Below are positions 2,082 through 23,425 of a stretch of DNA of 23,425 bases, piece after piece. Position 1 is the stretch's first letter. Each line of letters begins with the position of its first letter. The stretch spans positions 1 through 23,425 of the forward strand of contig NIVC01005181.1 of assembly GCA_002269645.1 (NCBI GenBank), given 5' to 3'. The stretch is from Macrostomum lignano. Lineage: Eukaryota. The notes under the pieces are model-generated. The model worked only from the letters and a program-made list of their open reading frames with translations, did not search any database and was not told where the DNA came from. Both the position numbers and the translations under genes were made by a program.

Positions 2082-3497
2082 CAGTATTGCCACTGACTGA
2101 TTTCGAAAAAAAAACGCAGGCCGAAAAAAATAACGCAAACTTTTTTTCTCATAAAAGGACTTCCTTGCTAGCCGTATCACTGTTACCGGATTCGAATATT
2201 GTACTTATATTGTATCTATTGCACGTATATTGTGTCTGGTGACTTCTGACACAGCGGCACTCATTCCAAAAATACCAAAGACGAAAAACCAGTAGTTACT
2301 TGTTAGCAAATTTCGAGCAAAAATTATAATAATTAGTTTTTCTTCTTCTTAGGCACATGGGGAAGGCGTGCAAGAGCAGCATTCTCTGCTTGTCGCTTCA
2401 GCCTTGCTGCTTCCTCGGCTGTACACTGAACGACTTGGTCCATTGCACGCTGTTCAATCTCGACATCTCGACCACAACACTGCCCTCAGAATTAAAATAA
2501 CGTACGCAAATCATCATAAGACCGTCACTCTCATCATAGCTGATGGAGTAAAAGCCAAATGACGATTCTAGTGCATCCACACCCACAATCGACTCAGTTA
2601 TTTTTTGCTGCACAAAAGGAACAATCGTGAATGACAGCAAGTAGGCCTGCTTGGTGCGGGCACAAGAAAAGCTTGCAGCGATTTTAGAATCCAAAAACAT
2701 GGCTTGGAATAAATCAGGGCTGTCGTCCTCCATGTTAAAGCTCTTCGATTTGTATGCCGAGTTCCACACCCAGCGAATTTCGGCTGCAGTCGTTTTGATT
2801 GACTTGTCATCGCTACTACTAGCTGCTGGATCTTTCTGTTTAGTGCAGAAGGATGTGATTGACTTCTGCTTCTGCTGCAGTGCTATAGCTGCATTTGCTT
2901 TCATGTGCTGTTTGATGGTGGAAATTCCACCACTTCCAACATGTATCGGTCTATCGCAGAAAAGGCAGAACGCGTCTGTATTGACTTTACCCTTCGTCAA
3001 CCATTTCTCTGCTTCTAGGGAAACAATCCAAGCGGCGTCGAAAGTTGTTAGCCAAGTTTGCTTTGAATCGTTCAACGCAGTGCTCATGCTCACAGAAATT
3101 ATTCTTTGTTGTTGTTGTCTGGAGTTTAAAATCAGCTTATGATTGAAATGCATATGAAAATACTTAAGTTGTCAGGTATGCTAATAATAACCTATGGTAT
3201 TGGGTGAGGGTGATTCTGTGGTGTTGAGGGCAGTTCTGTGGGTTCAAGGGCAATTCTGTGGGGTATTTTTAGTGGTTTCTAAATGTTACTAAGCAGGAAA
3301 GCAAAAGCGAGTTCTTTAAATTGTATTTTGTACAGTGTTTATTATTAGCATTACTGTTATTTGAGTGCAGTACAAAAATATTATAAGGATCAATGAACCA
3401 TTCAAGAAAAAACGCCAGAAAGTGAGAATTTGGAGAAAAAAACGCCTAACGCCAAAAAAAATGCCAGCGTTAAAAAACGCCACAAGTGGCAACACTG
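2082..3497 (-). mobile_element. Internally deleted (non-autonomous) hAT-superfamily DNA transposon, 1416 bp
   Basis: 13-bp TIRs with 1 mismatch: CAGTATTGCCACT at 2082-2094 and AGTGGCAACACTG at 3485-3497 (rc CAGTGTTGCCACT). Perfect 8-bp TSD ATCACTAC at 2074-2081 and 3498-3505. Subterminal AAAAACGC(C) motifs at both ends and a transposase fragment inside. Confidence 0.9.
2333..3153 (-). pseudogene. Truncated hAT-like transposase: N-terminal BED-like finger, region up to the first catalytic Asp, and an out-of-frame C-terminal tail
   Basis: ORF 3153-2398 contains AFCLFCDRPIHVGSGGISTIKQH (BED-like, second His missing), AAEIRW, LFQAMFLDSKIAASFSCARTK and YSISYDES...CVRYF. A different frame from ~2470 reads DVEIEQRAMDQ...RLPHVPKKKKN* (stop 2335-2333), which looks like a C-terminus with an NLS. 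Family assignment is from motif recall, not a search. Confidence 0.75.
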
Positions 3498-6340: not shown

Positions 6341-6553
6341 AAGGCTAAAAAGTTTTATTTTCAGCAAAATGTACATCAAATAGTATTACAGAATTAGCAA
6401 TAATATATAATAATATCCAAATAGATTGCTCAAATTTATATTTCAAACTCCCACATGTTAATACTGTTTGTTACATTGTAAACAGTATTATCTGGGTTTC
6501 ATCCATGATTATAAATTATCATTATGCAACATTTCAATGCGGTCAAAGCAGAC

Positions 6554-6945
6554 ATGTCAATTCTGGTAATGTCCCTTTGCCTAGCCGGCAGTCTGGCGCT
6601 CCTGTTCCTGGCTGTCTACCTGTTGATGACCCTCTCCGATCTGGACTGCGACTATTTGAATGTTCGGGAAGGCTGCGACCGGCTCAACAAATGGGTATGG
6701 CCGGAGGCTGCTGTGGCCGCTGCTGTGCCCATCCTGCTGCTGCTGACCCTGCACTGGGTCCTGTTCCTGCTGTCAGCGCCTCTGCCCTGCTACCTCATTT
6801 ATCGCTGCTTAACCCTGCCGAAAGGTCAGATCGGCTTGTTCGATCCGTTCGAAATCAATAATCGCAACTATATTAAACGGGCGATGTACTTTTGCACCTT
6901 TAAGCTCGTGCATTACCTGCTTGTGTTCTTTGTCCTGCTGTACAG
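6554..6945 (+). CDS. CNIH4: Cornichon homolog (CNIH4-like), exon 1 of 2
   Basis: MSILVMSLCL...VYLLMTLSDLDCDYLNVREGCDRLNKWVWPE...HWVLFLL...GQIGLFDPFEINNR...KLVHYLLVFFVLLY matches the cornichon pattern (TLSDLECDY, LNKWVxPE, GxFDPTEI). Donor TACAG|GTGCGT at 6946, phase 2. An in-frame upstream ATG at 6524 is an alternative start. Confidence 0.88.
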
Positions 6946-6967
6946 GTGCGTTTGGGTTCACTTTATC

Positions 6968-7375
6968 TGTCTGAATCTGCCACACCGCTCCCTGCTCTCC
7001 CAGTGCCTGAATCTGCCTCACCGCTCCCTGCTCCCCCAGTGCCTGAATCTGCCACACCGCTCCCTGCTCTCCCAGTGCCTGAATCTGCCTCACCGCGCCC
7101 TGCTCCCCCAGTGCCTGAATCTGCCACACCGCTCCCTGCTCCCCAGTGCCTGAATCTGCCTCACCGCTCCCTGCTCCCCCAGTGCCTGAATCTGCCACAC
7201 CGCGCCCTGCTCCCCCAGTGCCTGAATCTGCCACACCGCTCCCTGCTCCCCAGTGCCTGAATCTGCCTCACCGCTCCCTGCTCCCCCAGTGCCTGAATCT
7301 GCCTCACCGCTCCCTGCTCCCCAGTGCCTGAATCTGCCTCACCGCTCCCTGCTCCCCCAGTGCCTGAATCTGCCA
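6968..7375 (+). repeat. 36-bp minisatellite (~11 copies) in the cornichon intron
   Basis: Unit TGCCTGAATCTGCC(T/A)CACCGCTCCCTGCTCCCCCAG. Three units are 35 bp. Confidence 0.97.
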
Positions 7376-9055: not shown

Positions 9056-9092
9056 ATTATCAGTCCTCGGACTAGAAAAATAATTGGATATC

Positions 9093-9134
9093 ATGGCAGA
9101 TAATGTTAAAGTCGCCGTTCGTGTTCGCCCATTC
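9093..9134 (+). CDS. KIF28: Kinesin-3 (KIF28/KLP-6-like), coding exon 1: MADNVKVAVRVRPF
   Basis: Canonical motor start VKVAVRVRPF, absent from the ORF track because it is short. It joins in phase 0 to NERE at 9891. Confidence 0.9.
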
Positions 9135-9890
9135 ATATCCTTTTGACATTGCTCAGTAGTGCTGCTGTACGTTATGCATTGTCAATATATCAATTATACT
9201 AGGTGGCATTTTTCGTTTTTAAATCATTTTTGTCAAAGATTTTAGTTTTCAACAAAAGGATTAAGACGTTACTAATGAGACACATAAAATATTACGTAAG
9301 CGTGTACATCTGTAGATACACAGACGTTGACGTCACTTTTTGTATGCTATAAATATACATATGCAAGGATCTAATATTTATTTATAGCATAGAATACAAT
9401 ATAGATAGAAGATTTAACTTAACATTATGTATTTATTAAAAGAACTGTCTTTTATAGTAAAAATTATCACAAATGTTTACGTTTTGACTTGTTTGATAAT
9501 AATTAGCGAAGTGAATTGGGTGTCATTTGTTAGTTTTTAAAAAAAAACATGAAGGATGTCATGAAAATTTGTTTAATATAAAGAGCTAAAGCATAAGTTC
9601 TGAACTACAAGCTGTGGGTATTATGGTTTTAAATCCAATAAATCAATTTACATTTTACAAACGATTCACCATACACCTAACCATTCAAAGATATTTTGCT
9701 AATTACTATTTTTTAAACTTTGATTTTAGCCATATTTATAACAGATTATAACTTTATATCGTCTTTAGAAGTTATGTTTGATTAATTTCATAAATTTTAC
9801 CACGGTGCTACTTAACCTAATTAATAATCGAAAAATTATCATTATTTTTATTTTTCTTAACCGCGCACTTTTGAATCGCAACCCTGACAC
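9135..9890 (+). other. U12-type (minor spliceosome) AT-AC intron, 756 bp, phase 0
   Basis: 5' end ATATCCTTTT (consensus RTATCCTTT). Branch-like TTTCTTAAC at 9853-9861. 3' end CTGACAC|. Removal gives RVRPF|NERE, and no GT/AG pair at these boundaries does. Confidence 0.88.
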
Positions 9891-10079
9891 AATGAGCGCG
9901 AGAGGACTCGCGGCAGCAAGCTCATCATCAAGATGGACGGCACCCAGACTGTCATCACCGACCCGGCCAGCGGCCAGGATAAAAAATTTGCCTTCGATTA
10001 TTCCTATTGGTCACACGACGGCTTCACGGAGCAGGCAAACGGCTACTTTGCCCCGGCCAACCCCAAGTACGCTGATCAG
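9891..10079 (+). CDS. KIF28: Kinesin-3, exon 2
   Basis: NERERTRGSKLIIKMDG...KKFAFDYSYWSHDGF...KYADQ. Donor CAG|GTGAGA. Confidence 0.92.
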
Positions 10080-10131
10080 GTGAGAGATTTGGCCGGTTGC
10101 TCCTGGCGTGCCATGCAACTTCAGATTCCTA

Positions 10132-10435
10132 CAGTGAGCTGCCATCCCCATCTCACCAATCCTTCAGTGAGCTGCCCTCCCCATCTCACCAATCCTTCAG
10201 TGATCTGCCATCCCCATCTCACCAATCCTTCAGTGATCTGCCATCCCCATCTCACCAATCCTTCAGTGAGCTGCCATCCCCATCTCACCAATCCTTCAGT
10301 GATCTGCCATCCCCATCTCACCAATCCTTCAGTGATCTGCCATCCCTATCTCACCAATCCTTCAGTGATCTGCCATCCCTATCTCACCAATCCTTCAGTG
10401 ATCTGCCATCCCCATCTCACCAATCCTTCAGTGAT
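10132..10435 (+). repeat. 33-bp minisatellite (~9 copies) in kinesin intron 2
   Basis: Unit CAGTGA(G/T)CTGCCATCCC(C/T)ATCTCACCAATCCTT. Confidence 0.97.
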
Positions 10436-10502: not shown

Positions 10503-10820
10503 CAAAAAGTATTCAACGACCTTGGCCGAGGCGTCCTTGACAACGCCTGGGAGGGCTACAACTGCAGCCTGTTCGCCTACGGACAGACCGGTAGCGGCAA
10601 GAGCTACTCAATGATTGGCTACCAGGCCAACAAGGGCATTGTGCCCATCGCGTGCGAGGACCTGTTCAAAGCCATCGAGGCCAAGAAGCCGGAGATGAAA
10701 GCTGGCGAGGAATACCAGGTATCGCTGAGCATGATCGAGATCTATAATGAGCAGGTGCGCGACCTTCTCGTGTCCAAAACTGTCAAAGGCGGCTTGAAAA
10801 TTCGCCAGCACCCCAACAAG
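10503..10820 (+). CDS. KIF28: Kinesin-3, exon 3 (P-loop)
   Basis: QKVFNDLGRGVLDNAWEGYNCSLFAYGQTGSGKSYSM (P-loop 10581-10604)...SMIEIYNEQVRDLL. Flanked by CGCAG| and |GTAAGT. Confidence 0.95.
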
Positions 10821-11494: not shown

Positions 11495-11724
11495 GGCTTC
11501 TACGTCGAACAGCTGACCACCTCGCCCGTGAGCAGCTACGCTCAGATCGAGGCCAAGATCGCCGAGGGCTCGCACAACCGCACCGTGGCGGCCACCAACA
11601 TGAACGCCACCAGCAGCCGGGCGCACACCATCGTGGCCATCAGCTTCACGCAGAAGACCTTAGACGGCAGCGGGCAGAGCATGACACGGTCGTCTGTGAT
11701 GAACCTGGTAGATCTGGCTGGCAG
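11495..11724 (+). CDS. KIF28: Kinesin-3, exon 4 (switch I and start of switch II)
   Basis: GFYVEQLT...RTVAATNMNATSSRAHTI...NLVDLAG. Phase-2 donor CAG|GTGAAG. Confidence 0.95.
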
Positions 11725-11914
11725 GTGAAGACAATTTTACAGTACAGATTGCGCAATTAGATGACCAGACTGCGCCTTTTCGGTCCAGGGTAGCAACCAC
11801 ACAGAGACAGATGGTCGAGAGCTGTTGACCCATCATTTATCCTCAAAAGTATGAGAAAAATCAATCATGTTCGTAGGTTAGAAGATTAGATAAGCAGCTC
11901 TCGAAAAACCTTAG

Positions 11915-12646
11915 TGCTGGCGCCCCTTGGTGCTGGCGCCCCTTGGTGCTGGCGCCCCTTGGTGCTGGCGCCCCTTGGTGCTGGCGCCCCTTGGTGCTGG
12001 CGCCCCTTGGTGCTGGCGCCCCTTGGTGCTGGCGCCCCTTGGTGCTGGCGCCCCTTGGTGCTGGCGCCCCTTGGTGCTGGCGCCCCTTGGTGCTGGCGCC
12101 CCTTGGTGCTGGCGCCCCTTGGTGCTGGCGCCCCTTGGTGCTGGCGCCCCTTGGTGCTGGCGCCCCTTGGTGCTGGCGCCCCTTGGTGCTGGCGCCCCTT
12201 GGTGCTGGCGCCCCTTGGTGCTGGCGCCCCTTGGTGCTGGCGCCCCTTGGTGCTGGCGCCCCTTGGTGCTGGCGCCCCTTGGTGCTGGCGCCCCTTGGTG
12301 CTGGCGCCCCTTGGTGCTGGCGCCCCTTGGTGCTGGCGCCCCTTGGTGCTGGCGCCCCTTGGTGCTGGCGCCCCTTGGTGCTGGCGCCCCTTGGTGCTGG
12401 CGCCCCTTGGTGCTGGCGCCCCTTGGTGCTGGCGCCCCTTGGTGCTGGCGCCCCTTGGTGCTGGCGCCCCTTGGTGCTGGCGCCCCTTGGTGCTGGCGCC
12501 CCTTGGTGCTGGCGCCCCTTGGTGCTGGCGCCCCTTGGTGCTGGCGCCCCTTGGTGCTGGCGCCCCTTGGTGCTGGCGCCCCTTGGTGCTGGCGCCCCTT
12601 GGTGCTGGCGCCCCTTGGTGCTGGCGCCCCTTGGTGCTGGCGCCCC
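11915..12646 (+). repeat. 16-bp minisatellite, 45 perfect copies plus a partial copy, in kinesin intron 4
   Basis: Unit TGCTGGCGCCCCTTGG. 11915-12634 = 720 bp = 45 units with no variant seen. The edges are degenerate (CCTTAG on the left, AGTAATGGCGCCCC on the right). Confidence 0.97.
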
Positions 12647-12864: not shown

Positions 12865-12998
12865 CGAGCGGGCCGACTCCACCGGGGCCACGGGTGACCG
12901 GCTGAAGGAGGGCTCCGCCATCAACCAGTCGCTCAGCACGCTGGGGAACTGCATCAAGGCGCTGGCGGACCAATCCACGGGCAATTCCAAGGTTGTCG
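12865..12998 (+). CDS. KIF28: Kinesin-3, exon 5
   Basis: (S)[35 protein letters not shown]. Acceptor CCTCAAG| (AAG) with CTAAC at 12844-12848. Phase-1 donor G|GTAAGT. Confidence 0.93.
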
Positions 12999-13093: not shown

Positions 13094-13164
13094 TGCCGTT
13101 TCGCGACTCCGTGCTGACCAAACTGTTGCAGAATGCGCTCGGCGGCAACAGCAAGACTGTCATG
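13094..13164 (+). CDS. KIF28: Kinesin-3, exon 6
   Basis: (V)[23 protein letters not shown]. Flanked by TTTCAG| and |GTGAGG. Confidence 0.95.
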
Positions 13165-13224: not shown

Positions 13225-13707
13225 TCAGAATGACATGGCGTCACTCAGAATTGCATGGCGCCCACTCAGAATTGCATGGCGCCCACTCAGAATTGCATGG
13301 CGCCCACTCAGAATTGCATGGCGCCCACTCAGAATTGCATGGCGCCCACTCAGAATTGCATGGCGCCCACTCAGAATTGCATGGCGCCCACTCAGAATTG
13401 CATGGCGCTCACTCAGAATTGCATGGCGCCCACTCAGAATTGCATGGCGCCCACTCAGAATTGCATGGCGCCCACTCAGAATTGCATGGCGCCCACTCAG
13501 AATTGCATGGTGCCCACTCAGAATTGCATGGCGCCCACTCAGAATTGCATGGCGCCCACTCAGAATTGCATGGCGCCCACTCAGAATTGCATGGTGCCCA
13601 CTCAGAATTGCATGGCGCCCACTCAGAATTGCATGGCGCCCACTCAGAATGAAATGGCGCCCACTCAGAATGAAATGGCGCCCACTCAGAATTGCATGGC
13701 GCCCACT
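13225..13707 (+). repeat. 21-bp minisatellite (~23 copies) in kinesin intron 6
   Basis: Unit TTGCATGGCGCCCACTCAGAA with a few variants (GGTGCCC at 13511 and 13595; GAAATGG twice near the 3' end). Confidence 0.97.
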
Positions 13708-13764: not shown

Positions 13765-14270
13765 ATCGCCGCGCTGTCCCCGGCGGACATCAACTTCGAG
13801 GAGACGCTGTCCACCCTCCGCTTCGCCGACCGGGCCAAAGCCATCAAAACCAAAGCGGTGGTGAACGAGAGCCCCACTGACAAGCTGATCAGGGAGCTGC
13901 GCGAGGAGAACCAGCGGCTCATGGAGATGCTCAAATCTGGCGGCGGCGAAGCTGTCTCTAGCAGCGGCAGCGGCGGCGGAGACGGCGAGGGATCCGAGGA
14001 GGCTGAGGAGCGGATGCGCGAGCTGATGAAGCGCAACCAGGAAGAGATGGAGGCGATGGAGCGCCAGTGGGCGGAGAAGCTGGCCCAGGCGCAGGCCGAG
14101 TCGCAGGCGCAGATTCGCGACAAAGAGGCCGTGGGCGAGCGGCGCAAGCAGCAGCCGCACCTGTGGAACCTGAACGAGGACCCGTCGCTCAGCGGCCTGA
14201 TTGTGCACTTCTGCGAGCCCGGCAGCCACACCATCGGCAGGGAGGCGGAGTTCCAGCTGCGCGGCATCAG
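13765..14270 (+). CDS. KIF28: Kinesin-3, exon 7 (motor end, neck coil, start of FHA)
   Basis: IAALSPADINFEETLSTLRFADRAK...LIRELREEN...PHLWNLNEDPSLSG...HTIGRE. Phase-2 donor CAG|GTGCGG. Confidence 0.93.
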
Positions 14271-14403: not shown

Positions 14404-14742
14404 GATTCCCCAGATCCCCCAGACAAGGGATTTCCCAGATCCCAAAAAAGGAATTCTCCAGATCCCAGACAAGGGATTCCCCAGATCCCCCAGACAAGGG
14501 ATTTCCCAGATCCACCAGACAAGGGATTCCCCAGATCCCCCAGACAAGACAAGGGATTCCCCAGATCCACCAGACAAGGGATTCCCCAGATCCCCCAGAC
14601 AAGGGATTCGCCAAATCCCAGACAAGGAATTCTCCAGATCCCCGACAAGGGATTCCCCAGATCCACCAGACAAGGGATTCCCCAGATCCCCCAGACAAGG
14701 GATTCCCCAGATCCACCAGACAAGGGATTCTCCAGATCCCAG
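14404..14742 (+). repeat. ~23-25-bp minisatellite (~13 copies) in intron 7, interrupted by the LTR element; a residual unit lies at 19296-19324
   Basis: Unit approx. GGATTCCCCAGATCC(C/A)CCAGACAAG. It resumes after the 3' LTR as CCCAGGCAAGGGGTTCCCCAGATCCCAGG. Confidence 0.93.
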
Positions 14743-14964
14743 TGTTGTATATTAACAGAGAAGACACAGAGTATGCCCCCAAGCCCAATGTTTTGTTGTC
14801 TAAGGCACAACCTATTATTTTATAATAAAGTACGAGCTAGTTACAACATGAATCCCAAGAGGAGTTCGTAACTACCGGAGCAATACGATAGCTCGAACCC
14901 CTAAGCGAACCGTTGTCTTCTTACTTAAATGTAGCAGCTCCACGTCGGAGCAGAAGACATAACA
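14743..14964 (+). repeat. 5' LTR (222 bp)
   Basis: TGTTGTAT...CATAACA. TATAATAAA at 14821-14829. One mismatch to the 3' LTR (A14814 vs T19145). Confidence 0.97.
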
Positions 14965-17900
14965 ATGGCGACGAGTACAAAAATCGGCGAGTTTGACGTG
15001 GCTAAACCGGATAAATGGGAAGCCTACGAAGAGCGGCTAGAACAATTTCTCGCGTGAATAAAGTGACCGAGGAGGCACAAAAGCGAGCGAGCTTGATCAC
15101 AGTGATAGGCAATGACTGTTATCAATTGCTACGCAACCTGCTATCGCCTAAGAAGCCAAAGGATGTGGCGTACGACGAACAAGTGAAGACGCTGAGGGAA
15201 CACTTCAACCCAAAGCCGAAGATTGTCGTCGAGCGGTACAACTTCCACAGCAGAGTCCAACACGAAGGAGAAACAGTGAGTAACTTTGTTGCAAGTCTGC
15301 GGAGGTTGGCATCCACGTGTGGTTTTGACAAGTTCCTGGAGGAGGCACTGAGAGACAGGTTCGTCGTTGGCCTCAGGAACAGGCTCATCCAGCAGCGATT
15401 GCTACAAGAAGAGACACTGACCCTGTCGGGTGCATTAACGCTAGCGACTGCGATAGAAGCAGCAGAGCGAGGAGTCGTGACTATCACCTCCGCCACAGGA
15501 GTCGGTCATAGTGTCAATTTCTCGAAGGAAACTAACAAGCAATCAACTGCAGCGCAACATGGGAAAAGGAGCCGCGCCCAAGATGGATGTTTCCGCTGTA
15601 ACGCGAAGGATCATTGGGCAAGGAGCTGTCCATATAGGAATAAAACGTGCAGCAAATGCGGCCGAGTAGGACATCTTAGAGATGCATGCCGTACAAAGGA
15701 CAAGGCAAAAGAGTCTGGAAGTGGCAGGTCGAAGCGATTCAACTCTTCAAAACGTGGGAAGTCCGGTAAGGTGCATTACGCGCGGAATTTCGACAGTGAG
15801 TCAGAAAGTGAGGGTTCGGACTGCAGTGGTCGAGACAAGCATTCCGAGATCAGGACTGTGTTTGCTACAGGAATGGCTGGCTTTAGTGGATCAGCACCGT
15901 ATATGTGCGAGTTAAATATAAATGGGCATTTTGTAAATTCCAACTGGATACTGGCGCAGACAAGACCCTTATTAACGAAAATAGTGGCAAGAAAATTGGC
16001 TTAAGGTGGTCTAAATCTAATGTTAGACTGTCAAGTTACACAGATAATCTCATACCAGTTCTGGGCGAAGCTACTGTTATCGTAACTAACTATCAGGAAA
16101 GACAGTATCAACTAACTGCGCTTGTTGTGAAGGGAGACAGAGTGAATCTTCTAGGTCGGGACTGGCTCTCTTCGTTGAAAATTGACTGGAGCAAATTTGC
16201 CCATGTGAAAACAACAACGTTGGTTCCACCTATCGAGCGGTTAATGAAGAAGTATGATCAAGTGTTTGCTGAAAGCCTTGGCACTATCAAAGGGTTAAAG
16301 GCCAGAATACTGTTGAAAGAAAACTTCATTCCAAAGTTTTGTAAGAGTCGACCGGTGCCATTTGCGATCAAAAGCCTCATTGAAGAGGAGCTGGCGAATT
16401 TGCAAGCTCAAGGCATAATAAAAAAAGTGAGCGCATCAGACTTTGCATCTCCGATTGTCCCAGTTTTGAAGCGCGACGGAAAATCCGTAAGGATTTGCGC
16501 TGATTTTAAGAGAACCGTTAATCCCCAATTGGAAGTTGACAAGTACCCTCTGCCGAAACCGGAAGAAATTTTCGCAACTCTTAATGGTGGAAGAGTCTTC
16601 TCGAAATTGGATATTTCGCAAGCGTTTTTACAACTGGAACTGGAGGATTCGTGCAAAAAGTTTGCTACAATTAACACACATCTGGGTTTGTTCCAATACG
16701 AGCGACTAACAATGGGTCTGGCATCAGCCCCTGCACAATTTCAAGAAGCGATGGAGAAAATTTTACAAGGCTTGGAAGTGGTTGTCTATATAGACGACAT
16801 TCTTGTATCCGGCAGTTGTTTGGAAGACCACGACAAAAGACTGGAAGCTGTATTAGAACGTCTTTTAGCTCACGGTGTGCATTTGAATCGGAAAAAGTGT
16901 GAATTCCGCCTAAATAGAATTGAATTCTTGGGCTACGTTATCGATGAATCGGGAATCCATCCCTCGAAAGAGAAAGTTCGGGCAATTCATGAAGCTCCAA
17001 CACCAACTAACGTGTCAGAGGTTCGTTCCTTGATAGGAATGATCAGCTATTATGGAAAGTTTATTCCAAACCTATCATCAATACTGGTACCTCTCAACAG
17101 ACTATTGCACAAAGACGCAGAGTTTCATTGGAGTGAGGCGTGTTCGGCAGCATTCGAGAAAGTGAAGGCAACTCTAACTTCTGAGCGTGTTCTGGCTCAT
17201 TTTGATCCTAAGAAGCAGCTTGTATTGCAAACGGACGCCTCCAAATATGGAATCGGGTGTGTCATCTCACATTTGATGCCCAATGGCGAGGAAAGGCCTG
17301 TAGCATTTGCTTCGAGAACTCTAACAAAACCTGAGATCAACTACTCTCAACTAGAGAAAGAAGCGCTGGCCATCGTATTCGGAGTTAAAAGATTTCACCA
17401 ATATCTTTTTGGACATCATTTTATACTAGTGACTGACCATAAACCCCTACTGACCATTTTTGGAGATAAGAAGGACATTCCGAGCATAGCAGCAAGCCGA
17501 CTTCAGCGCTGGGCCGTGTTGCTTTCTGCCCATCAGTATACCATCAAATTCAGAAGAACAGAGGATCATTCGAATGCTGACGCACTTTCACGTCTCCCAG
17601 TGCCTGGTAATATCAGTAAGGTTGATCGTGTCTTGGAGGTCAGGCTAGAAATGCTACCAGTCAACGCAGAAACAATACGAACCGAGACACAGAAAGATTC
17701 ACAGCTTCAGAGAGTTGTTCGATACTGTCAAAATGGTTGGCCAGACACCTGTGAGCAAGAGCTGGAACAGTACTTCAGGAAGCGGAACGAGTTTTGCATT
17801 GAGCAAGGTGTGCTATTTTGGGGAGTAAGAGTAATTATTCCAAGAAGCTTACAACAGGTTGTGTTAGAACTGCTTCATGATGGACATCCAGGAATTGTTG

Positions 17901-19027
17901 CAATGAAATCCAGACTGCATGTATGGTTCCCAGGAATCGACAAGGCTATAGAAGCCCTAGTCCATAGTTGTGAAGGCTGTCAGCTGCAAAGGAATTTGCC
18001 TGCACAAGCACCAGTTCAGCCTCTTGTCTGGCCGGAAAGGCCTTGGACTCGAATTCAACTGGACTACATGGGACCATTCCATGGATACTACTGGCTTGTT
18101 ATAGTCGATGCAACAAGTAAATAGGTTGAGATCTTTCCCATGAAGCACGCAACTACCAACAGGACGATAGAATGTCTACGAGAAACTTTCGCACGATTTG
18201 GCATCCCACAGCAAGTGTTGAGTGACAATGGAAGCCAGTTCTGCTCAGCTGAGTTCCGTACTTTCCTAGAGCGGAATAACATCCGACAGATTTTGACAGC
18301 TGTTGGACATCCGCGTACCAACGGACTTAGTGAAAGAATGGTGCAAACAGCAAAGTCTGCTATCAAAGCAGGAATTAAGACTCACGGTGATCCAATCTTG
18401 AGCATGCAGAACTTTCTGTTTCGCTATCGCAGTACACCTCATTCAACAACCGGTAGAATACCAGCAGAGATGATGTTATGCTACAGTCGCAGAACACGGT
18501 TGGATTTTCTTAAGCCGGATGCTTACTCAAGAGTGTTAAACAAGCAGACGGATGTCACTGAACGACAAATAGAGAGAGGATCAACTATTCGAGAATTTCA
18601 AGAAGGAGACTCAGTTCTGACGTTGGACTTCAGAAGGGAGCGAGAAAACAGGTGGATTTCTGCCAAGGTGATCGCCCGCACAGGACCGCTGTCCTATAGA
18701 CTGTTGGTCAACGGACAAGTCTGGAAGCGACACGTCGACCAAATTGTCAGTGCAGAATTACCTGGACAGAACAAGCCGGAGGCTCATCACCTACCGCCTA
18801 TTCTGAAGGATCCTAGGAGAGTTCAGAGCGACAAAACTACCACCGAGAAAGAGCGGCGAGAGAGTGAATCAACTCAACCGGTCCAAGACGTGCCAAGCCG
18901 AGGAGAATCTCAGACAGCGGACACAGACCAGGATGACGCTGACTCTGGAGCAGAAGGCGTGGGCACAAGGATACTGAGGGATCGAAGCAAATTGAGAAAA
19001 CCGGATCGGTTGCATTACAGTGAATAA
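14965..19027 (+). pseudogene. gag-pol polyprotein with 2 frameshifts and 1 in-frame stop
   Basis: Gag MATSTKIGEFD...WEAYEERLEQF. Two CCHC knuckles (15588-15629, 15648-15689). Protease LDTGA (D at 15947). RT YIDD (16787-16798). RNase H TDAS (D at 17234). Integrase HHCC and D(18062)-D(18224)-35-E(18332). Lesions: -1 shift ~15052, -1 shift ~15935, TAG at 18122-18124. Confidence 0.93.
14966..14975 (+). promoter_or_regulatory. Primer-binding site TGGCGACGAG, probably for tRNA-Ser(GCU)
   Basis: It lies 1 nt after the 5' LTR and is complementary to ...CUCGUCGCCA, the 3' end of animal tRNA-Ser(GCU) as recalled. The host tRNA was not checked. Confidence 0.75.
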
Positions 19028-19062
19028 TTCCGGATAACTGACAATGCAACTTTTTTATTGAC

Positions 19063-19073
19063 AAAAGGGGGAA
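19063..19073 (+). promoter_or_regulatory. Polypurine tract AAAAGGGGGAA
   Basis: Directly abuts the 3' LTR TG at 19074. Confidence 0.9.
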
Positions 19074-19295
19074 TGTTGTATATTAACAGAGAAGACACAG
19101 AGTATGCCCCCAAGCCCAATGTTTTGTTGTCTAAGGCACAACCTTTTATTTTATAATAAAGTACGAGCTAGTTACAACATGAATCCCAAGAGGAGTTCGT
19201 AACTACCGGAGCAATACGATAGCTCGAACCCCTAAGCGAACCGTTGTCTTCTTACTTAAATGTAGCAGCTCCACGTCGGAGCAGAAGACATAACA
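19074..19295 (+). repeat. 3' LTR (222 bp)
   Basis: 221/222 identical to the 5' LTR. AATAAA at 19155-19160. Confidence 0.97.
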
Positions 19296-19394: not shown

Positions 19395-19684
19395 CATCCT
19401 GCCGCAGCACGCCACGCTGAACAACAGCTCCGACAAGGTGACGCTGACGCCGCAGAATGGCGCCAAAGTGTGCGTGAACGGGCGCGAGGTTGTCCAGGAG
19501 ACCCTGCTGAACCATCACGACCGGGTGCTGTTCGGAAACAACCACCTGTACGTGTTCGACAATCCCAAGGCCGCCGCGCCGTCTCCGTCGCCGATTCCGA
19601 CATTTGAGGCGGCGCAGGCGGAACTGGCGGAGAACTCCGGAGTCATGGGACTGCTGGGCGACAAGGCCAAGAGCAGCAGTGCCG
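19395..19684 (+). CDS. KIF28: Kinesin-3, exon 8 (FHA domain)
   Basis: (S)ILPQHATL...AKVCVNGREV...LNHHDRVLFGNNHLYVF...TFEAAQAELAE. Acceptor ACGCAG|. The 3' end is placed at the GC donor G|GCAAGT (19685); a weak phase-1 GT at 19679 is the alternative. Confidence 0.85.
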
Positions 19685-19699
19685 GCAAGTGCTGACTGC

Positions 19700-20982
<1,283 letters not shown>

Positions 20983-21690: not shown

Positions 21691-21700
21691 GTAAGTCTTT

Positions 21701-22370
21701 GAGTCTGCCGTGACCTCCATGAGACCTTGAATCTCTTGAGACTTTTATGTGTGGTCCATTGAATCAGCTGGGACCTCTATGGGGTCCTTTGAATCAGCTA
21801 TGAACTCCATGGGGTCCTTTGAATCAGTTGTGACCTTCATGGGGTCCTTTGAATCAGCTGTGACCTTCATGGGGTCCTATGAATCAGCTGTGACCTCCAT
21901 GGGGTCCTTGAATCAGCTGTGATCTTCATGGGGTCCTTTGAATCAGTTGTGACCTCCATGGGGTCCTTTGAATCAGCTATGAACTCCATGGGGTCCTTTG
22001 AATCAGTTGTGACCTTCATGGGGTCCTTTGAATCAGCTGTGACCTTCATGGGGTCCTATGAATCAGCTGTGACCTCCATGGGGTCCTTGAATCAGCTGTG
22101 ATCTTCATGGGGTCCTTTGAATCAGTTGTGACCTCCATGGGGTCTTTGAATCAGTTGTGACCTCCATGGGTCCTTTGAATCAGTTGTGACCTCCATGGGG
22201 TCCTTTGAATCAGCTGTGACCTCCATGGGGTCCTTGAATCAGCTGTGACCTCCATGGGGTCCTTGAATCAGCTGTGATCTTCATGGGGTCATTGAATCAG
22301 CTGTGATCTTCATGGGGTCCTTTGAATCAGTTGTGACCTCCATGGGGTTCCTGAGTCCGCTGTGACCTTC
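21701..22370 (+). repeat. 29-30-bp minisatellite (~22 copies) in kinesin intron 10
   Basis: Unit GAATCAGCTGTGACCTCCATGGGGTCCTTT with degenerate edge copies. Confidence 0.95.
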
Positions 22371-22706: not shown

Positions 22707-22889
22707 GTGAGCAACTATGGGAACCATGGCGACAATAATCACCGAGCAACCATGTCCCAATAGCAAAATAAATCCATAGCAACAATGAGGTCATAGAAAC
22801 GATGATGCCATAGCAACAATGGCCCCATGGCAACAATTGCTCTATAGCAAAAATGAGTCATACGAGCGTAGAAACGATGACGGCACAGG

Positions 22890-23425
22890 AACAATGACGC
22901 CATAGCAACATTGACGCCATAGCAACAATGACGCCTAGCAACATTGACGCATAGCAACAATGACGCCATAGCAACATGACGCCATAGCAACAATGACGCC
23001 ATAGCAACATTGACGCCATAGCAAAAATGACGCCTTAGCAACATTGACGCCATAGCAAAATGACGCCATAGCAACATTGACGCCATAGCAACAATGACGC
23101 CTTAGCAACATTGACGCCATAGCAACAATGACGCCATAGCAACATTGACGCCATAGCAACAATGACGCCTTAGCAACATTGACGCCATAGCAACAATGAC
23201 GCCATAGCAACATTGACGCCATAGCAACAATGACGCCATAGCAACATTGACGCCATAGCAACAATGACGCCATAGCAACATTGACGCCATAGCAAAAATG
23301 ACGCCTTAGCAACATTGACGCCATAGCAACAATGACGCCATAGCAACATTGACGCCATAGCAACAATGACGCCTTAGCAACATTGACGCCATAAGCAACA
23401 ATGACGCCATAGCAACATTGACGCC
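22890..23425 (+). repeat. 17-bp minisatellite running off the window end; degenerate copies from ~22720
   Basis: Units ATGACGCC(A/T)TAGCAACA and TTGACGCCATAGCAACA mostly alternate, forming a 34-bp dimer. Confidence 0.95.

Follow-up and report, generated by a model that had tools for sequence, protein, structure and literature searches.

A probable U12-type AT-AC intron at a conserved codon boundary of a KIF28/KLP-6-type kinesin-3 gene in the flatworm Macrostomum lignano

Introduction

Canonical U12-type introns of the AT-AC subtype (PMC3584512; SpliceRack, PMC1557818) have a 5′ splice site of the form /ATATCCTT, a TTCCTTAAC-like branch site near the 3′ end, a terminal AC, no polypyrimidine tract, and a deep conservation of position. 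The distance from the branch site to the 3′ splice site is optimal at 11-13 nt (PMC3584512); one set of classifier windows spans 8-30 or 8-38 nt (PMC1557818), and another classifier searches for the branch site from -40 to -1 (PMC11347168). Two cytosines of the branch site have been reported to be important for recruitment of the minor spliceosome (PMC11347168). AT-AC ends also occur in U2-dependent introns (e.g., in SCN4A/SCN5A; PMC1557818), the 5′ splice sites of which are U2-like save for the first base. Among flatworms, minor introns and most or all of the minor snRNAs have been reported for the genus Schistosoma (PMC10639083); U12 splicing is absent from nematodes such as C. elegans (PMC3584512). 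Our literature search retrieved no paper that joins Macrostomum with U12 or the minor spliceosome, nor one that joins Kif28 with a minor intron.

An earlier note, made from sequence alone, had proposed that a U12-type AT-AC intron splits the start of a kinesin motor in Macrostomum lignano. Here we report an analysis of the window (the whole 23,425-nt stretch of DNA that contains this locus). The proposal is supported by the splicing signals, by an enumeration of splice pairs, and above all by the presence of orthologous U12-type introns at exactly this position in six other animals; we consider it very probable that positions 9135-9890 constitute the first intron of a KIF28/KLP-6-type kinesin-3 gene and that this intron is U12-type, of the AT-AC subtype. 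It shares with the canonical AT-AC introns the 5′ splice site, a branch site of the same kind near the 3′ end, the terminal AC, the lack of a polypyrimidine tract, and the deeply conserved position; it differs in the branch distance, which is about 30 nt in Macrostomum versus the 11-13 nt optimum, and it lies in phase 0, the minority phase of minor introns (about 22% on average; PMC10639083). With the U2-type AT-AC introns it shares only its ends, given that it carries the full U12 consensus at the 5′ splice site together with a U12 branch motif. The intron is a previously unannotated member of a well-known class with one unusual feature, a 29-nt spacer, and the known workings of minor introns are unchanged by these findings.

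Results and Discussion

The kinesin gene

On the forward strand, an ATG at 9093, with an in-frame stop codon (TAA, 9081-9083) on its 5′ side, opens a first exon of 14 codons. The coding part of this exon (9093-9134) encodes MADNVKVAVRVRPF, a peptide identical to the N-terminus of the Lamellibrachia protein, and ends in phase 0. Exon 2 (9891-10079; NERERTRGSK...PKYADQ) starts with AAT GAG CGC GAG (NERE) and has GTGAGA directly 3′ to it. Exons 3 (10503-10820) and 4 (11495-11724), each with GT-AG introns on both sides, encode the P-loop (GQTGSGKS) and switch I (SSRAHT), respectively, and switch II (DLAGSE, completed across the junction) is encoded by exon 5 (12865-12998). These are followed on the same strand by exon 6 (13094-13164), by exon 7 (13765-14270), which contains the end of the motor, the neck coiled coil, and the start of the FHA domain, and by exon 8 (19395-19688), which contains the FHA domain and is collinear with the C-terminus of the M. 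lignano database protein A0A1I8GX08. The introns other than intron 1 have good GT-AG sites, with the donors GTGAGA, GTAAGT, GTGAAG, GTAAGT, GTGAGG, and GTGCGG.

The product of exons 1-7 comprises 496 residues and matches the Pfam Kinesin motor at 3e-105; further along the gene, Pfam matches to Kinesin_assoc, FHA, and KIF1B were obtained, the latter two in downstream exons. Because motor, FHA, and KIF1B domains are all present, the gene was assigned to the kinesin-3 family. The order of the domains (N-terminal motor, neck coiled coil, FHA, KIF1B-type domain) is that of a kinesin-3 of the KIF28/KLP-6 type. When the product was compared with protein databases, the top match was A0A1I8GX08 (425 of 427 residues identical in aligned columns). 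The next matches, which were 64-69% identical, came from annelids, molluscs, Ciona, and others, and carried the names kinesin-related protein 1 (Lamellibrachia), KIF28P (Biomphalaria and Ciona), and Kinesin-like protein 6 (Ridgeia). Its domains and closest named relatives, rather than a tree, place the gene among the KIF28/KLP-6-type kinesin-3 genes.

Signals of intron 1

Directly after exon 1, the intron begins with ATATCCTTTT (9135-9144), within which the putative 5′ splice site ATATCCTTT (9135-9143) is a full match to the U12 consensus /RTATCCTT. Near the other end, the candidate branch-point motif TTTCTTAAC (9853-9861) matches TTCCTTAAC (TTCCTTRAY) at eight of nine positions; the single mismatch is a C-to-T change, with which a G-U pair with U12 is still possible. 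When the intron was scanned for pairing with an assumed sequence of the U12 branch-binding box, TTTCTTAAC formed the best duplex in all 756 nt (-9.5 kcal/mol), and this value falls inside the range obtained for the orthologous branch sites (-6 to -11.7 kcal/mol). None of the sites closer to the 3′ end approached this value. The terminal dinucleotides are unmixed, with AT at 9135-9136 and AC at 9889-9890. Moreover, the sequence from 9862 to 9890 (cgcgcacttttgaatcgcaaccctgacac) contains 17 pyrimidines among its 29 nt, the longest run being cTTTT, and is without a polypyrimidine tract.

Excision of 9135-9890 restores RVRPF/NERE in frame, joining the phase-0 end of exon 1 to an exon 2 that starts NERERTRG. 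Upon retention, the frame would read ATA TCC TTT TGA (MADNVKVAVRVRPFISF, then stop at 9144-9146). A second TGA in the kinesin frame lies just 5′ of exon 2 (9885-9887) and blocks any 3′ splice site farther upstream, so that productive 3′ splice sites are limited to 9887/9888 or 9890/9891. The AT start, the branch motif, the AC end, the restored reading frame, and the early stop on retention were thus all found as the earlier note had described them.

To estimate how readily such signals arise by chance, motifs were counted in the window and compared with shuffle rates. Neither motif was enriched: RTATCCTT occurred twice over both strands (1.3 expected), and TYCTTRAY occurred five times (8 expected). 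The improbability resides in the placement of the motifs and not in their presence. The probability that the 5′ motif starts exactly where the frame breaks is about 1.5-3e-5 per position, that of a branch motif falling inside the last 40 nt by chance is about 5e-3, and the joint chance of both placements is estimated at about 1e-7. The other RTATCCTT in the window (GTATCCTT, 18967-18974, reverse strand) is located inside the integrase ORF of a retrotransposon, with nothing that points to a splice site.

Orthologous introns in other animals

The genomic loci of ten related proteins were compared at the RPF/N junction. In Trichoplax adhaerens, the 5′ junction reads MAENVRVAVRVRPF/ATATCCATTC and the branch motif TCCTTAAC is followed after 10 nt by the 3′ junction aaTCCTTAACtctgcctcAC/AACGAG (AC). 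Nematostella vectensis has ...VRVRPF/ATATCCTTTA, the branch motif TTCCTTGAT at the same distance of 10 nt, and TTCCTTGATtcctgagcAC/AATAGT (AC). In Lamellibrachia satsuma, MADNVKVAVRVRPF/ATATCCTTTG is paired with the branch motif CCCTTAAC and, 9 nt beyond it, with gCCCTTAACcaaccccAC/AATTCG (AC). The intron of Saccoglossus kowalevskii starts with ATATCCTTTT, as in Macrostomum, its junctions being MAENMRVAVRVRPF/ATATCCTTTTGT and ...tttcctAC/AATGAT. Introns of the form ATATCC...AC are therefore located exactly at RPF/N in these four animals. In Biomphalaria glabrata, the junction ...VRVRPF/GTATCCTTTG and the branch motif TCCTTAAC (10 nt) are followed by aaTCCTTAACaaagtattAG/AATGCT, which ends in AG (GT-AG U12 subtype). 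For Oratosquilla, the 3′ half was recovered (branch motif TTCCTTAAC, 10 nt, then tTTCCTTAACttctgctcAC/AACAAA, ending in AC), and a search of 10 kb of upstream sequence yielded no exon 1. Altogether, a U12-type intron was observed at the orthologous position in six other animals of five phyla (Oratosquilla by its 3′ half), with the 5′ motif at the same codon boundary in five of them. When six 5′ junctions were aligned, TATCC and the TT at intron positions +8/+9 were invariant. The comparison with KIF28/KLP-6 orthologues that the earlier note had called for thus returned the same RPF/N boundary.

The four AT-AC orthologues and the Macrostomum intron are alike in phase 0 at RPF/N, the ATATCC start, a TCCTTAAC-like branch motif, and the AC end; they are also similar in length (about 0.9-1.4 kb versus 756 nt). 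They differ in how far the branch motif stands from the 3′ splice site (9-10 nt for the orthologues, 29 nt for Macrostomum) and in the branch motif itself, where Macrostomum has T in place of the first C. Intron 1 of Biomphalaria KIF28P shares with Macrostomum the position, the TATCCTT core, and the TCCTTAAC branch motif, but has GT-AG ends and is very short (110 nt).

The site is intronless in the choanoflagellate Monosiga, in the nematode Ancylostoma, and in the monogenean Cichlidogyrus, the gene of which belongs to a second paralogue group; in Octopus, a gene of this second group carries an ordinary GT-AG intron that is displaced by eight bases in the 3′ direction. The recurrence of U12-type introns at RPF/N across phyla shows that the intron is old and that the Macrostomum copy is orthologous to the others. 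By this comparison, the last ancestor shared by placozoans, cnidarians, and bilaterians, if not an earlier one, already had the intron at RPF/N, and its U12 signals have been kept in most of the lineages examined, with one switch from the AT-AC to the GT-AG subtype, in the snail. The locus cleanly illustrates a phase-0 U12 intron that has persisted from before the placozoan/cnidarian/bilaterian split.

Two further observations were made at the orthologous loci. On the two strands of the Saccoglossus locus (L006), two KIF28-type genes are arranged head to head, and in each of them exon 1 ends ...VRVRPF and is followed by ATATCCTTTT (VRVAVRVRPF/ATATCCTTTT in the paralogue, the 3′ side of which was not located); the U12 intron thus predates that duplication. 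In Lamellibrachia (L004, 4058-4127), the intron ends with two copies of a 26-nt block containing the branch motif and AC (ttgtttctgcccttaaccaaccccac), spaced 44 nt apart; both copies are followed by AATT, yielding two candidate 3′ splice sites.

Mis-annotated N-termini

It had been anticipated that standard gene predictors would mis-annotate the N-terminus of this gene, and the public models bear this out. A0A1I8GX08 begins at RERTRG, directly past the AG at 9895-9896, and is without the first 16 residues, exon 1 being missing. It also skips 53 residues of exon 4 (GFYVEQL...ISFTQ; 11495-11653), including switch I (SSRAHT), via an internal CAG, and for this reason we regard it as a poor model. 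Where the two overlap, A0A1I8GX08 and the window differ by two residues (PASAKY versus PANPKY), and the window therefore represents another allele, another homeologue, or another assembly of this gene.

Similar defects were observed in other animals. Exon 1 is missed in Trichoplax, whose model starts with PHNERE, and in Nematostella, whose model starts by read-through (...PEHNSRE); for Saccoglossus and Oratosquilla, an internal Met of exon 2 serves as the model start. Judged from their N-termini only, the models of Strongylocentrotus and Strigamia begin past the RVRPF block. In Trichoplax, Nematostella, Saccoglossus, and Oratosquilla, the loss was confirmed at the locus. These models lack the conserved N-terminal motor strand because annotation pipelines did not splice the AT-AC intron. 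For annotation, this means that the public kinesin models of M. lignano and of several orthologues lack N-terminal motor sequence.

A long branch-to-3′ spacer

The feature that sets the Macrostomum intron apart is the spacer between the branch motif and the terminal AC (9862-9888; 29 nt when the AC is counted, cgcgcacttttgaatcgcaaccctgacAC), which lacks a polypyrimidine tract and puts 30-31 nt between the branch A and the intron terminus. The earlier note had called this distance "somewhat longer than typical"; it is indeed longer, but the wording understated the difference, given that all six orthologues have 9-10 nt past the branch motif and the Macrostomum distance is about three times that of every one of them. 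The spacer is beyond the 11-13 nt optimum (PMC3584512) and at the outer edge of the classifier windows (PMC1557818; PMC11347168). Also, TTTCTTAAC retains one of the two branch cytosines implicated in minor-spliceosome recruitment, which counts against the U12 assignment. If the distance rule held in Macrostomum with the same strictness as in vertebrates, inefficient productive splicing would be expected.

How the spacer arose was considered by removing 9862-9880 in silico, which leaves an intron end, TTTCTTAAC+ACCCTGACAC, that closely resembles those of the orthologues; by this comparison, a history in which about 19 nt were inserted is plausible. Folding of the spacer alone gave -1.2 kcal/mol, no better than shuffles. 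CGCGC at 9862-9866, immediately 3′ of the branch motif, could pair with the complementary GCGCG at 9896-9900 (exon 2 codons 2-4), and the resulting 5-bp stem across the 3′ splice site, which would loop it out, gave -8.8 kcal/mol for 9845-9900, a value equalled by 8 of 200 shuffles. A hairpin that shortens the effective branch-to-3′ distance was rejected, as the folding is too weak against shuffles and its significance is doubtful.

Alternative explanations

Two alternatives would do without the U12 machinery at this site. Intron 1 might be a substrate of the major spliceosome, which would treat it as a U2-type AT-AC intron or use a GT/GC-AG pair; this reading draws some support from the existence of U2-dependent AT-AC introns (PMC1557818). 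To examine the pairs available, we enumerated all GT-AG, GC-AG, and AT-AC combinations that keep the kinesin frame free of stops, taking donors that lie between the ATG and the TGA at 9144 and acceptors as far as 9990. Among the 49 pairs obtained, 9135/9890 alone yields ...VAVRVRPFNERERTRG..., which aligns without gaps to the orthologues (VAVRVRPFNSREK, NAREK, NEREK). GT/GC-AG splicing was rejected because each such pair deletes at least six residues of the conserved VAVRVRPFNE and uses weak sites, with donors like AAT/GTTAAA or CGT/GTTCGC and acceptors lacking a pyrimidine tract; in this sense, the earlier statement that no GT-AG solution exists withstood the enumeration. A U2-type AT-AC intron was likewise rejected, because the 5′ end (ATATCCTT) is the U12 consensus and not of the U2-like ATAAGT type; the intron has no polypyrimidine tract, and the orthologues carry U12 branch motifs. 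We regard removal by the major spliceosome as extremely improbable. The other possibility is that exon 1 is skipped in vivo and that the 35-nt M. lignano spliced leader, which ends in ATG, is trans-spliced to the AG at 9895-9896 to give M-RERTRG... in frame. About 30% of M. lignano genes are trans-spliced (PMC8629364), A0A1I8GX08 begins exactly past this AG, and 9897 is the start of a codon. However, the acceptor (aatgAG) misfits the trans-splice acceptor motif [T/C]TNCAG and has no preceding pyrimidine tract, the resulting protein would be without the VKVAVRVRPF strand, which is conserved among the N-termini of the orthologues examined, and both exon 1 and the U12 5′ splice site are perfectly preserved. 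Moreover, the database protein that suggests such a start is the same poor model that omits switch I. Trans-splicing at this AG is therefore very improbable.

The remaining alternatives accept a U12-type intron and concern its long spacer. A weaker but nearer branch site might be used, such as CTTTTGAAT (9868-9876), the A's of which are 15-16 nt from the 3′ splice site, or proximal non-productive 3′ sites (AA 9874-9875, AC 9867-9868) might compete with the AC at 9889-9890; either way, productive splicing would be inefficient. Such a scenario agrees with the distance optimum, with the error-prone choice of 3′ splice sites described for U12 introns (PMC3584512), and with the short distance in all six orthologues, and any 3′ site from 9862 to 9884 leads to a stop or to the wrong frame. 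Against it, CTTTTGAAT pairs poorly with the assumed U12 box and is not among the best duplexes of the intron, and 29-30 nt is still inside the published search windows (8-30 or 8-38 nt, PMC1557818; -40 to -1, PMC11347168); on balance we think it unlikely. Alternatively, this gene copy might be decaying in a polyploid genome, the insertion of about 19 nt having put the branch site out of range so that the intron is inefficiently removed and a pseudogene is under way. The contrast in spacer length with every orthologue, the orthologue-like end regained upon removal of 9862-9880, the presence of a very young LTR element and many minisatellites in the introns, and the description of M. lignano as a hidden polyploid (PMC10468722) could all be read in this way. 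Yet each of the eight exons examined has an open frame and good GT-AG sites, 425 of 427 residues of the protein agree with the other known copy, and the intron retains an intact 5′ splice site, branch motif, and AC, which makes decay quite improbable, more so than the use of a nearer branch site.

Splicing of intron 1 and the minor spliceosome

For the U12-type AT-AC intron that we favor, the steps of splicing can be drawn from established knowledge of the minor spliceosome; we infer both the use of the 9134/9891 junction in RNA and the identity of the branch nucleotide. The U11/U12 di-snRNP would recognize the 5′ splice site ATATCCTTT together with the branch motif TTTCTTAAC, the branch adenosine (9859 or 9860) would attack 9135, and exon 1 would be joined to 9891 to yield ...VRVRPF-NERE.... 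Since unspliced RNA stops after three extra codons and encodes no motor, production of the protein would depend on minor splicing. That minor splicing of this intron is rate-limiting and "gates" the motor, as had also been proposed, is speculation.

When the 97-residue peptide spanning the junction was searched against a collection of 5.8 billion proteins, no Macrostomum transcript product was found, the best match being 65% identical; minor snRNA genes gave no Rfam match in the 23,425-nt window. The fact that the U12 signals are intact after so long argues for continued selection, and, given the preserved signals and the minor introns of Schistosoma, a working minor spliceosome in Macrostomum is a reasonable inference. 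The preserved signals are indirect evidence that a functional minor spliceosome has been kept in free-living macrostomid flatworms.

The 29-nt spacer offers a small natural test of the rule on branch-to-3′-splice-site distance. A tentative proposal, which we consider unlikely, is that either the Macrostomum minor spliceosome works with a branch about 30 nt from the 3′ splice site, or the extra spacer of about 19 nt purposely lowers productive splicing, with the nearer 3′ sites, each leading to a stop, serving as decoys. If the former were true, the distance rule would be relaxed in a flatworm; if the latter were true, the output of a probably cilium-associated kinesin would be tuned by minor-spliceosome activity, amounting to a built-in splicing throttle.

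Other features of the window

An LTR retrotransposon (14743-19295) is located inside intron 7 of the kinesin gene, on the same strand. Its two 222-nt LTRs (14743-14964 and 19074-19295) are identical, suggesting a very recent insertion. The element contains ORFs for gag with a zinc knuckle (15015-16001), for protease, RT, RNase H, and the integrase zinc domain (15887-18121), and for the integrase core (18125-19024). Nearly every intron of the kinesin gene contains a long and very homogeneous tandem array (10127-10435, 11909-12646, 13225-13707, 14404-14740, 19700-20982, 21697-22368, and 22774-23425), with units of 33, 16, 21, 25, 30, or 17/34 bp and 84-99% matches; an (AGTT) microsatellite of about 322 copies is also present.

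On the reverse strand, a 257-residue open frame (2401-3171; …FCLFCDRPIHVGSGGISTIKQHMKANAA…) had no Pfam match and may be the remnant of a mobile element. An ORF of the cornichon family (6515-7150; Pfam 4.5e-29) lies 2 kb upstream of the kinesin gene and on the same strand; none of three start variants of this ORF was found in the protein collection. Its frame runs into a 36-bp minisatellite of 11 copies (6971-7374), such that the predicted C-terminus is a repeated CLNLPHRSLL tail.
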